From contig CM074525.1 in assembly GCA_037379345.1 (NCBI GenBank), forward strand, positions 16,545,275 through 16,609,274: a DNA stretch of 64,000 nucleotides. Reading direction: 5' to 3'. Below the pieces are notes generated by a model. The model saw only the letters and a program-made list of their open reading frames with translations. It was not told where the DNA came from and made no database searches. This DNA comes from Perna viridis. Taxonomy: Eukaryota. Numbering within the stretch: position 1 is the first letter of the stretch; every line of letters starts with the position of its first letter. Of this stretch, positions 39,949 through 52,193 are shown in pieces. The position numbers were made by a program, and so were the translations under genes.

Positions 39949-40248
39949 GTTGTCCGTTCCATGATGTCGGACAAATACAAAAATCAAAAATACGGCTCCC
40001 TTAAAAGTGATTGTCTCAAGAAAGGAGTGTTATGGGAGGACCCGGAGTTTCCCGCCAATAATAAATCCTTATTCTACAGTAAAGTTGACAATGATATTGA
40101 ATGGAAAAGACCAAGTGAATTATGTAAAGTACCAAAGCTCGTGATAGAGGGCGTTAGTTGCGATGACCTTGTGCAAGGTGAACTCGGAAACACGTGGTTT
40201 GTTACGGCATGCGCAAGTCTGGTGCTGCAAAAAAAGATGTTTGAAAAG
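39949..40248 (+). CDS. CAPN5: Calpain-5-like exon 2 (protease core 1; catalytic Cys replaced by Thr)
   Basis: LWEDPEFPA, IEWKRPSEL, DLVQGELGNTWFVTACASL; 300 nt, phase 0-0. Confidence 0.92.
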
Positions 40249-40532
40249 GTACAATGTAATAAATACACGAAAGTAATAGCACAAAACGAACAATGATGAT
40301 TCTTATCCTTTGAAGAACATTTAAAACATTTTATAGAAGTAAACAACTATCACACATTCAGAAAACACATGTAGGCAATGCTAACACATTTCAATAAATA
40401 ATGAGCTGAAGTTGTAGATACAGGTACAGTGTACGTAATATCTGTTCTGTTGTGTAATATGCTAAAATTGTTAATTGTTTCTTTCAATCGAAACAAAAAG
40501 ATATTTTATTGACATGTGCATTTTTGTATCAG

Positions 40533-40744
40533 GTGGTGCCAAATCTAAAGGAACAAGAATGGGACGAGTACTCAGAGAAACCTAAATATGCCGGTATCTT
40601 CCGGTTTTCTTTCTGGAGGTTTGGTCAGTGGGTCGACATTGTTGTCGACGACAGACTTCCTACAAAGAACGGAAAACTCGTTTTCTGTCATTCTAAATCC
40701 CGAAATGAGTTCTGGAGTGCGCTGTTGGAAAAGGCCTATGCAAA
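40533..40744 (+). CDS. CAPN5: Calpain-5-like exon 3
   Basis: [26 protein letters not shown]...[13 protein letters not shown]; AG/GT, phase 0-2. Confidence 0.93.
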
Positions 40745-42069
40745 GTAAGTTGACTTCAAATACCGATTTAACGAACGATAATTAATAAGTGAATAACTCT
40801 TGGAAACAACATTTCATACTTGTGCACTGTGTTATACAAGTACAGGTACATACTTACATATACACGTACATTGTAAATGTAAATGTAAATGTGCTTCAAG
40901 TAGTCGGCATCTAGGCTCAGCCGATGAGTCTAGTTAAAAGCAATAACCGTTTGAATGATCGATTATTCCGGACTCTCTGACTATCTGTTGATGGATCTAA
41001 TTTCCAAGTATTTATGTTAAAAAGTATTAAAGTGTTCACATCTAACCTATATGTATGTACTTAAAACTCACAAGAACAATATTTACAAAACACTCTGAAG
41101 ATCAATATAGACGTGAAAGTTTGAAGATTTGCATTGAAATGGAAGAAGGCTCTTCAGATGAGAAATAGATTTTTATCGAGATATTTCTAGAAAGGTTATA
41201 ATAATAAATAGAGACGAATCAAGGAGGTCTGGGTGTTGACCTCTTTTTTGGAAAATGTTACAAACTTATCGCTGATTTTGTTAAAAATGAGCAAATGATA
41301 GCCTAGAATCCCCCTCTTTTCTGAAACCCCCTCCTTGTCAAAAATCTCTGAATCCGCCGCTGTGATATAACGTCTTCGAATACATCAATAATAATACAGC
41401 TCATGTACATGCACGTGTACATACATATGTATAAACATATTTAGAATAGAATAAACAGGCGATACATACATGTATGTAACTAATTTCAGAAACAAATATA
41501 GCCATGTACATGTATAGTGATTTCAGGGAATGTTAAAGCCCAAATACCAAAGCCGTTTGTTCACAAGTATTGCTTAAAATATGTGTTGTTATTTTCTGTT
41601 GTGGAAGGATACCGGTGTGATAAAAATATGCTCTACTGTAGATCTGAATTGTCTAAAAAATTATTATGATCGGTATTTAAAAAAAACGATGTACAACTAT
41701 ATGAGAGTCTACATTTATGCTATTATAGTATTTTGGTTTATTGTTAATGTCAAGGCTATACACCGTAGTTAAGCACTTTACAGAAATGTGCGATTGAACA
41801 TGCGTGTTTGTGTTGGAGCGGAATTTGATATTCAAAAAGTCTTTTATAAAACTAAACATACAGTCTCTGTTTCCACGTTTTTGCATTAGCACACGTTTTA
41901 TATTTCCATTTTTCTTTACATCTGAATGTTATGATTTGTGTTATTTCTCTTTCACCGAAAATTACCAGCGCGTCGGATGTCGTACAAGAGGCAAGACATG
42001 TGGAGTTTGCCTGGTCGAATTTTCCACTTATTTGAACATTTATTATTCCTCGTTTTACCTATTTTTCAG

Positions 42070-42259
42070 ATTGTATGGAGATTATGAATCGTTGACCCAG
42101 GGTGACACAGCTGATGCACTCGTAGATTTCACAGGGGGCGTGGCCGAGAAACTAGCCCTCATGAATATCAATATTCAGGACGACCTGATCAAAACGGCTC
42201 TGTTCAGAAAACTACGTGATGCTAGTGAAAATAGTGCTCTTATTAACTGCAATATCAAT
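42070..42259 (+). CDS. CAPN5: Calpain-5-like exon 4
   Basis: LYGDYESLTQGDTADALVDFTGGVAE; phase 2-0. Confidence 0.92.
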
Positions 42260-50889: not shown

Positions 50890-51262
50890 ATAGCACTCCA
50901 CATAAGAATAGTGCAACGTGTTAATATATGATAACCCCAAATACGGCTACATATTTTTATTTTTTTTATTAAGCTACCGTATGTATTCTTATTCAATTCC
51001 AGTCTGTCTGCTCTTAGGAGAAAATTTACATTAAAAATCCAAAAGTTTCTACTATATTTCAGTGTTTTTTACAGAGTTTTCTCCCTCAATTTTGATTTTG
51101 ACTGTGCATTCTATAAAGGTTTTATCTCGTAAGAGCACGGGTTTTATGAAAAGCCACACGTTAATTTCTGTTAACTATAACATTTTAAACAAAATTAAAA
51201 AAAATTAAAGTAGGTTTCCAACCATGAAACACAATTAACATGATTCTTAGCTGGAGTACTAA
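50890..51262. mobile_element. TTAA-flanked non-autonomous DNA transposon, copy 3 (more diverged)
   Basis: Collinear with 21849-22232 (CTGCTCTTAGGAGA, TAAGAGCACGGG, TTAGCTGGAGT); TTAA at both ends. Confidence 0.75.
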
Positions 51263-51551
51263 TTAATTAGAGATCTTAAATATTCAATATTTTTATTGAT
51301 TCTTCTGTAAAGCATTCAAATACCATTTTAGTTTTCTTCGTTGATTTGTGGAATTATCGGACCCAATTCAATTTTTTTTTAATTGTGAAAATACATGTAA
51401 CTGTTTTTGGGGCGGGTGAATTTGATTTCGATCAACTGGAAACTTACATGTACAATCATAACCGTGCAGTACATAATTGTACATGTATAAAAATTATTTA
51501 AAAAAAAAATTCTGCTACACAAATATATGATAAGTCAATTCTTTTATACAG

Positions 51552-51712
51552 CTTTAGATCCATATCTTGTTGTCCGGTGTGAAGGAGAGAAAGTTGTTTC
51601 TCCTGTTATAAAAGAAGAACAGCGTGGTAAACGAGTGGACACCGGAAGTGCCGAATTTAATTTCAAGGTCACCTTCTATAGAAAGAAACCGGAAGTGCCA
51701 ATCACTATTGAG
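51552..51712 (+). CDS. CAPN5: Calpain-5-like exon 11 (C2 domain)
   Basis: DPYLVVRCEGEKVVSPV...FYRKKPEVPITIE; phase 1-0. Confidence 0.9.
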
Positions 51713-52010
51713 GTAAATATCGAGCAGTAATGTTATGCAGCTGAGAGTTTGTAAATCATTTTTATCGTCCTTAAATGGTTCAAAGAGTATAGCTCAAGTA
51801 AATCAACATACTTTATAATTGTGTTGTGAATTAGTCAGAAAGTGTTCCCCTTCAGGAATCCTACAATTTTATCATCATGGTGAATAAACATACACATATT
51901 TTTTCTATTTGAAAAAAATAATAACCAAAACAGATCTATCCTTGGCATGTTATGTAAGAGCATATCACTCTGCAGACCAGGGCCATTAAGTTTCGTCATT
52001 CTGTAAACAG

Positions 52011-52193
52011 GTAGTCAATAGCAACACCATGATAGATGACTTCTGTGCCGAGGGACGACTGTCAGAAAATGGAGACGAAGATGGCAAGGAAGAGAAGCTG
52101 ACCGTTTATGGGAAAGGAAAGGAGAAAGACATGGAAAGACCGGGAAATATCATCGTCCACGTAAGATCAAGTACCGACTTGCAGTATCTTTGA
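52011..52193 (+). CDS. CAPN5: Calpain-5-like exon 12 (end of C2 domain, stop)
   Basis: VVNSNTMIDDFCAE...PGNIIVHVRSSTDLQYL-TGA. The 12 exons total 1956 nt = 651 aa plus stop; C2 tail instead of penta-EF hand. Confidence 0.88.
   Translation, partial: VVNSNTMIDDFCAEGRLSENGDEDGKEEKLTVYGKGKEKDMERPGNIIVHVRSSTDLQYL

Follow-up and report, generated by a model that had tools for sequence, protein, structure and literature searches.

The window analysed here is the whole 64,000-nucleotide stretch of Perna viridis DNA at positions 16545275-16609274 of one contig in a 723-Mb genome (G000:C15:16545275-16609274). Its plus strand carries, at 39961-52193, a gene of the calpain-5/TRA-3 type with 11 coding exons, a coding sequence of 1923 nt and a product of 640 aa. 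The gene is intact, expressed and strongly constrained, and it lacks the calpain nucleophile, with a Thr at the position of the catalytic Cys.

Gene structure, active site and transcripts

The exon model was obtained by local tblastn with P0047, the best full-length relative in the database, as a guide, and the borders were then read individually. All introns have GT-AG ends, the exon phases are compatible and there are no internal stops. The initial annotation, made from the sequence alone, had described all exons as open and phase-compatible, and the rebuilt model bears this out; its limits of 39949-52193 also proved exact, as they extend from the base next to the acceptor of coding exon 1 to the last base of the TGA stop.

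A 5' untranslated exon at 33612-33724 (plus strand, as are all exons; 3' end exact, 5' end approximate) is spliced to 39949. Transcript contigs of the public runs X1 and X11 extend 94 and 111 letters upstream of 39947, and the window contains a single match to their consensus, at 33693-33722, with AG/GT after it. Coding exon 1 (39949-40248), directly preceded by an AG acceptor at 39947-39948, with the ATG at 39961 and a GT donor after 40248, encodes the N-terminal CysPc subdomain PC1 including the active-site motif (Peptidase_C2, E 4e-21). PC1 continues in exon 2 (40533-40744; E 8e-28), exon 3 (42070-42259) spans PC1/PC2, and exon 4 (44814-45004) encodes the part of PC2 with His248 (44865-44867) and Asn280 (44961-44963). 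Exon 5 (45748-45825) contributes the Ca2+-site residues EGEFW of PC2; it was identified by tblastn to P0047 and to the Mytilus trossulus locus L047 and by its GT-AG borders, and the loose end after 45004 in the X1 and X11 contigs continues into it. The end of PC2 and the start of the CBSW domain (domain III) lie on exon 6 (46307-46487), and CBSW extends over exons 7 (48015-48137) and 8 (48972-49165), all three being supported by Pfam Calpain_III (E 4e-7 for exon 8), tblastn and a matching Mytilus exon. Exon 9 (50712-50833; 80% identity with the Mytilus exon, GT-AG borders, fitting phase) is assigned to a linker and the first strands of a C-terminal C2 domain, which continues on exon 10 (51552-51712; aligned to the Pfam-C2 region of P0047, with a Mytilus exon match) and ends on exon 11 (52011-52193; tblastn and Mytilus exon match) with the stop TGA at 52191-52193.

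Exon 1 shows a difference in gene structure among bivalves. The mytilids (window 39961-40248; L047 4634-4924; L042, a close relative, 10001-10300) have lost the intron that follows ...EWKRP in other bivalves, and the fragments P0003, P0004, P0006, P0010 and P0012 start or end at this point.

Window positions 40174-40200 translate to QGELGNTWF, where ACG (40192-40194) encodes Thr78. In a phmmer search against PDB chains, Thr78 aligns with the catalytic Cys81 of human CAPN5 (GNCWFVAAC; 6p3q, E 5e-24), and it is also opposite the nucleophile of calpains 1, 2, 3, 8 and 9. The oxyanion-hole glutamine Gln72 (40174-40176), His248 (LGHGY) and Asn280 (MANPW) are all retained, and the set formed by the Cys-His-Asn triad and the oxyanion Gln is thus incomplete, with the Cys alone replaced. 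Translation and PDB alignment confirm what the initial annotation had read at this site, namely the QGELGN-T-WF motif with ACG at 40192-40194 and the retained His (GHGY) and Asn (ANPWG), and we agree that three base changes separate TGY from ACG. Neither an alternative (mutually exclusive) Cys-bearing exon nor a second calpain active-site motif was found in any of the six frames of the window.

An error in the assembly or the sequencing reads, or recoding to Cys in RNA, was considered as an explanation of the codon, and no evidence in its favour was found. All sampled 31-mers of exon 1 are present in 20 public runs from 8 studies, and four runs (X1, X11, X6 and X24) were aligned to window positions 39700-45100. 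Three studies are represented by spliced contigs, namely those of X1 (2286 nt, depth 204), X11 (3566 nt, depth 82) and X6, which carries a second organism label. In the raw stranded RNA-seq data of X24, exons are covered only by pairs with the first mate on the minus strand, which is consistent with a plus-strand mRNA. The junctions 40248/40533, 40744/42070 (in 6 raw RNA reads and 2 contigs) and 42259/44814 are reproduced in contigs of X1, X11 and X6 and in X24 reads, with GT..AG ends. Not a single differing letter occurs in exon 1 in the contigs of X1, X11 and X6, whether RNA- or DNA-derived, or in the raw RNA reads of X24; the codon is ACG only, which excludes an assembly error, a polymorphism or RNA recoding of the Thr codon and strengthens the view, already held on first reading, that a sequencing slip is unlikely. 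As the same residue also occurs in independent assemblies of other species, and as a change from ACG to UGY involves two or three base changes, which is beyond any known editing, we regard the chance of an artefact as negligible.

Two regions of intron 3 also gave transcript signal. At 42837-42895, contigs of three runs cover a stretch of about 58 nt at depths of 14,000-35,000, and raw RNA reads from both strands match it in their hundreds; its flanks and back-joints are numerous and varied, and it resembles a short repeat that occurs within very many transcripts. The stretch 44169-44405 is covered by RNA-type contigs at a depth of 140-330, and in 11 raw RNA reads 44169 is joined to 44273 with no GT-AG ends; this stretch could represent a further repeat or some small, unrelated transcript.

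Orthologs and origin of the clade

A word search with exon 1 returned only fragments of 53-168 aa, and GNTWF is present in eight of them, all from other assemblies. For whole-protein searches and the fold prediction we used the database proteins P0039, P0047 and P0200 in place of the window protein, while the joined 640-aa window model was used for local BLAST, the tree and the substitution analysis. P0039, reached via cluster members, is part of a spliced transcript from a near relative. A search of the whole library with it gave P0047, a protein of Solemya velum, as the best full-length match, and 10 of its best 150 matches have a residue other than Cys at the nucleophile position (S, G, F, N, R, N, N, P, Y and T). 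A search with P0047 led to the nearest named relative, “calpain-5-like isoform X1” of Mytilus trossulus (P0200), with 86% identity over the whole length. Its locus, L047, shares the 11-exon structure and the ACG codon with the window gene.

These searches also brought up some peculiarities of the collection itself. P0039 ends, at residues 236-295, in three tandem copies of a stretch of about 22 residues beginning at the exon 3/4 junction, probably an artefact of contig assembly. Two proteins, P0043 (1136 aa) and P0045 (413 aa), found in the clusters of P0013 and P0003, were set aside as unrelated and bacterial-looking; that they were grouped with short calpain fragments is a quirk of how the collection was clustered rather than a feature of the locus.

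The relationships were analysed in a tree of 58 rows and 633 columns (IQ-TREE, LG+C20+F+G4, quick search, with support from the Shimodaira-Hasegawa-like approximate likelihood ratio test, SH-aLRT), rooted on three classical calpains and with taxon names taken from the source annotations. The window gene falls into a clade of 40 lophotrochozoan proteins (SH-aLRT 99), the internal order of which largely follows the species tree (brachiopod, annelids, nemerteans, chiton, bivalves, gastropods). Its sister group (99) consists of CAPN5-type proteins from molluscs in which the triad is intact. Vertebrate CAPN5 and CAPN6 group together in a clade of their own (100), and the split between all 55 non-classical rows and the classical outgroup also has a support of 100. 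Joining the 40-row clade with vertebrate CAPN6 was rejected by the approximately unbiased (AU) test, with a difference in log-likelihood of 112 and p = 1e-5. The separate clades and this rejection indicate that loss of the catalytic residue is convergent with calpain-6. Furthermore, since members from a brachiopod, annelids, nemerteans and molluscs stand in one clade, the duplication of a CAPN5-type gene from which it arose is, as read from the tree, older than the split of these phyla. The window gene had initially been taken for an independent, convergent, non-proteolytic CAPN5 paralog of molluscs; its independence from CAPN6 is upheld by the tree, and its origin has to be moved back to before the molluscs.

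The residue at the nucleophile position differs widely between members of the clade. Thr occurs in Mytilus, Mya, Pinctada, Patella, Lottia, Gigantopelta, Lymnaea, Biomphalaria, Bulinus and Paralvinella, and Ser in Dreissena, Haliotis, Babylonia, Nucella, Batillaria and Elysia. Ala is found in Mercenaria and Ylistrum, Pro in Ruditapes, Gly in Bradybaena and Tubulanus, and Val in Lingula and Physella, while Solemya, Mactra, Sinanodonta, Liolophura, Owenia and Lineus have Cys. The Thr codon is ACG in the window gene, in two Mytilus sequences and in Mya, ACA in Pinctada and ACT in Lottia, which answers the question, raised at the outset, of whether orthologs keep Thr; the Solemya codon is TGC. The gastropods Gigantopelta (P0205/P0225) and Babylonia (P0209/P0233) each possess two members of this degenerate-triad clade, the second copy being on a long branch.

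The genome that harbours the window gene also retains canonical members of the subfamily. About 17 calpain loci in all match Peptidase_C2 in it, and a search for a Cys-retaining CAPN5 elsewhere in the genome, which had been proposed initially, yielded three CAPN5-type genes on contig C2 (near 58.61, 58.64 and 67.11 Mb) with intact GNCWF, GHAY and NPWG exons. They are located at C2:58611144-58620747 (+), C2:58628680-58640038 (-) and C2:67102740-67120854 (-), the first two being neighbours on opposite strands.

Catalytic centre and conserved frame

In the 40 clade rows the nucleophile column reads T16 S10 C6 A3 G2 V2 P1, whereas all 18 other rows (canonical CAPN5, CAPN6 and classical calpains) have Cys, and keep His, Asn and Gln as well. 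Mapped on the tree, the column requires at least 7 changes between Cys and other residues, and at least 19 state changes altogether. A second alignment, of 35 clade rows and 14 canonical rows, was used to list those columns that are invariant in the canonical proteins and variable in the clade, and this list is headed by the oxyanion Gln, the Cys and the His. The catalytic His column contains H20 Q8 Y2 and others, and the oxyanion Gln column Q17 E9 T5 P3 N1. Most gastropods have Q, K, L or F in place of His, Lingula has Y and Tubulanus has R. Solemya has kept its Cys, and its His has changed to Tyr. As far as the alignments go, all catalytic residues of the clade except Asn are drifting.

The neighbourhood of these positions behaves differently. 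G84, W90, A94, G254, Y261, N291, P292 and W293 (P0200 numbering) show little or no variation in the clade, and D69, E173, E316 and E318 are kept, which we take to be the Ca2+ sites of the calpain core by correspondence with mu-calpain. Two motifs beside the catalytic residues differ throughout the clade from the canonical form, reading WFVTA (canonical WFVAA) and GHGY (canonical GHAY). Catalytic columns that vary among neighbours that do not are the signature of a pseudoenzyme clade, in which fold, cleft frame and core Ca2+ residues appear to have been kept by strong purifying selection while the chemistry was released. The initial annotation had described one Cys-to-Thr replacement. The Thr of the window gene stands, but it is one of seven residues at this position and His and oxyanion Gln have been lost in many lineages too; what the alignments indicate is a clade-wide relaxation of the whole catalytic centre and not one event in one mollusc.

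Could the window gene be a recently disabled copy on its way to becoming a pseudogene? Apart from the lost catalytic residue, such a fate might be suspected from the C2 domain, which is the fastest-evolving part and scores under the Pfam threshold. For an estimate of selection the window gene was compared with L047 of Mytilus trossulus, with 635 aligned codons and 86% amino acid identity; L042 was left out, as only its exons 1-2 are within reach. The rate of nonsynonymous substitution (dN) is 0.076-0.088 and that of synonymous substitution (dS) is 1.5 (LWL85) to 3.0 (maximum likelihood), so that silent sites are saturated, the NG86 and YN00 estimates are unusable, and the LWL85 and maximum-likelihood values serve as bounds for a dN/dS of 0.03-0.06. 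By domain, dN is about 0.063 in core and CBSW (with an omega of about 0.035 for CBSW) and 0.17 in C2. The ratio had been suggested initially as a check, and at a maximum of about 0.06 it is far below 1, over a divergence at which only the 11 exons can still be aligned by blastn and the introns have diverged past recognition. Together with an open frame of 640 codons, canonical splice sites, transcripts correctly spliced in several studies, and the same substitution in other mytilids, distant bivalves and limpets, this makes an incipient pseudogene a most improbable explanation. With the loss of an essential residue, a dN/dS of at most about 0.06, spliced transcripts and the clade-wide variation of the catalytic columns, the gene has the features expected of a pseudoenzyme.

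Domain by domain, the protein largely conforms to the calpain-5 type. In the window, Peptidase_C2 (PF00648) scores over the cut-off on each of exons 1-4, and Calpain_III (PF01067) is found on exons 6-8, with exon 8 over the cut-off. In the ortholog P0200, profile positions 1-297 of PF00648 are covered (E 5e-103) and PF01067 is matched with E 3e-22. The Pfam C2 profile gave no match in window exons 10 and 11 (open reading frame stretches 51527-51730 and 52029-52190, with exon 9 outside the scan) or in the Mytilus ortholog; the C-terminal region of the window protein does align with the Pfam-positive C2 domain of P0047. An AlphaFold model was computed for P0200, which is 86% identical to the window protein, from a 49-row alignment, with a mean predicted local distance difference test score (pLDDT) of 87.9 and a predicted template modelling score (pTM) of 0.87. 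According to Foldseek the model matches the CAPN5 core 6p3q (TM-score 0.92, root-mean-square deviation 1.9 A, 44% identity) and m-calpain over core and domain III, and its C-terminal part matches solved C2 domains with TM-scores of 0.7-0.77. Taken together, the profiles and the model support a predicted CysPc-CBSW-C2 layout of the window protein.

Function and comparison with known systems

Of the possible explanations, we favour one where the window protein is a non-proteolytic calpain with a selected function, to which we assign a probability of about 0.75. That it does not cleave is suggested by three considerations: Cys-to-Ser calpains are inactive, the Ala, Gly, Val or Pro of some orthologs cannot be nucleophilic, and His and Gln are dispensable in the clade. 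The orthologs with Ala, Gly, Val or Pro at the nucleophile site are conserved to the same degree as the rest. The crystallised CAPN3 chains in the PDB are C129S/A forms. Autolysis is absent in the engineered Cys-to-Ser form of the Aplysia calpain AplCCal1, and calpains without activity behave as dominant negatives (PMC5650170).

Several points weigh against this interpretation. The term “non-proteolytic” is, for every member of the clade, derived from sequence logic, and five of the 40 (Mactra, Sinanodonta, Liolophura, Owenia and Lineus) keep the full Cys-His-Asn triad, so that the clade could descend from an active protease whose function was lost or altered several times and not in a single event. 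In C2 the mytilid proteins score under the Pfam threshold, and structure and whole-protein searches refer to orthologs of the window protein. The tree comes from a quick search with SH-aLRT support only and has some open forks, and with saturated dS the dN/dS value is an upper bound, near 0.06. Finally, 26 of the 40 members have Ser or Thr, with a hydroxyl side chain, at the critical position, most bivalve rows including the window gene keep His (Solemya, with Tyr, does not) and all keep Asn; the bivalve sub-lineage could therefore have some residual or altered hydrolytic activity.

The last point leads to the proposal that the protein is still a hydrolase, with Thr78, or Ser elsewhere, as the nucleophile of a Thr/Ser-His-Asn triad within the calpain fold. 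It would account for the hydroxyl residues, for the retention of His and Asn in every bivalve row, the window gene included (Solemya, with Tyr for His, excepted), for the fact that Thr is specified by different codons (ACG, ACA, ACT) in Mytilus, Mya, Pinctada and Lottia, and for the strong conservation of cleft residues. However, bivalve orthologs with Ala (Mercenaria, Ylistrum) or Pro (Ruditapes) show the same overall conservation and still keep His and Asn, so that retention of His is not tied to the presence of a nucleophile. Conversely, many members with Thr or Ser have lost the His (Q in Patella, K in Gigantopelta, L in Haliotis, F in Nucella, Q in Biomphalaria), and 18 of 35 rows no longer have the oxyanion Gln. 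A codon for Cys can turn into one for Ser by a single mutation and into one for Thr by one more, so their frequency fits drift among small residues. With engineered Cys-to-Ser calpains being inactive (PMC5650170), we consider a Thr- or Ser-dependent hydrolase very improbable.

A non-proteolytic window protein would be a Ca2+-responsive binding protein, whose preserved cleft frame, CBSW and C2 domains would dock partners or substrates. It could serve as a scaffold, or as a natural decoy with a dominant-negative effect toward the three triad-intact CAPN5-type paralogs of the same genome, and its function would then converge with that of eutherian calpain-6. A scaffold or substrate trap had been put forward in the initial annotation as a possible role. 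We rate this decoy or scaffold mechanism at somewhat less than even odds.

A more specific role, as a microtubule-binding stabiliser of the calpain-6 kind acting through CBSW, has in its favour the predicted CysPc-CBSW-C2 layout and the kind of loss, both as in CAPN6, the reported binding of CAPN6 to microtubules through CBSW (summarised in PMC13413365 and PMC3315469), and the finding that CBSW is the part best conserved with Mytilus (dN 0.064, omega about 0.035). Yet the clade is not orthologous to CAPN6, no microtubule-binding surface was identified by sequence, and conservation of the protease-core cleft is no weaker, something that a role of CBSW alone would not call for; such a role is rather unlikely in our view. 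In its broadest form, the scaffold or decoy reading would mean that Lophotrochozoa possess an ancient orthogroup of Ca2+-sensing pseudo-calpains, with the cleft used for binding and with a role as regulators or decoys of active CAPN5-type calpains, in effect a second, much older and independent “calpain-6”. A bolder version would have the bivalve forms with Thr/Ser-His-Asn keep a novel kind of hydrolysis within the calpain fold. This wider proposal is tentative, and we would sooner doubt it than expect it to hold in full.

Many calpain-like proteins are known to lack the triad, with 344 in UniProt and 100 across animal phyla, and CAPN6, CalpC and the CLPRs are among them (PMC3315469); orthologs of the window gene are already present in databases as “calpain-5-like”. 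The losses in the CalpC family have been noted, and lophotrochozoan members of classical family C are reported to keep the triad (PMC5650170). A survey of Aplysia lists two TRA calpains without comment on the catalytic residues of the TRA type (PMC5650170). We found no account of a mollusc or other lophotrochozoan TRA-type calpain lacking the catalytic Cys, nor of the clade, in a literature search of incomplete coverage that is no proof of novelty. Added interest comes from the age of the clade, its presence in several phyla and the fact that the catalytic centre was struck repeatedly. If our interpretation is correct, this is a natural experiment in which the nucleophile was changed at least 7 times, with seven different residues at the site, and in which the state was maintained in four or more phyla that together display dozens of naturally occurring catalytic-centre variants. 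It would provide a comparative system for the role of a calpain fold that does not cut and for the surfaces that stay conserved in it, most conspicuously the cleft frame, the Ca2+ sites and CBSW. It also has a practical side, as proteins of the clade are annotated as “calpain-5-like” (one as “Calpain-6”) and are counted as proteases in transcriptomes of mussel, oyster and clam, which is probably wrong.

Among known systems, the canonical CAPN5/TRA-3 proteins (human CAPN5, C. elegans TRA-3, Aplysia AplTra1/2) have the domain layout that is predicted for the window protein, and the window gene lies inside the TRA/CAPN5 clade. They differ in having kept Gln, Cys, His and Asn throughout (18/18), and in reading WFVAA and GHAY where the clade has WFVTA and GHGY. 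Drosophila CalpC and C. elegans CLPR/CLP-3 resemble the window protein in retaining a calpain fold without the full triad, but belong to other subfamilies (classical family C and nematode-specific clusters, respectively). Outside the calpains, SERA5 of Plasmodium is a papain-clan pseudoprotease in which the nucleophile Cys is replaced by a hydroxyl residue, Ser. It is reported to be retained for a regulatory, non-catalytic role (PMC5500368), as the window protein may be. It is unlike the window protein in belonging to the unrelated family C1 rather than C2, in being secreted by a parasite, and in having no Ca2+ switch and neither CBSW nor C2.

Like the window gene, eutherian CAPN6 is a CAPN5-type paralog that has lost the catalytic Cys; it has the CysPc-CBSW-C2 layout predicted for the window protein and is retained as a non-proteolytic protein (PMC3315469, PMC13413365), as the window gene probably is. 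The two differ in origin, as CAPN6 derives from a separate vertebrate CAPN5/CAPN6 duplication, while the lophotrochozoan clade is far older and has also lost His and the oxyanion Gln; in our tree set, the CAPN6-type proteins of bird, crocodile and gar are still Cys-His-Asn. The replacements differ too, the catalytic Cys having given way to Lys in eutherian CAPN6 and to the small residues T, S, A, G, V and P in the lophotrochozoan clade. Calpain-6, the textbook calpain without proteolysis, is usually seen as a mammalian oddity, and the present data suggest that the same subfamily reached the same outcome independently and much earlier.

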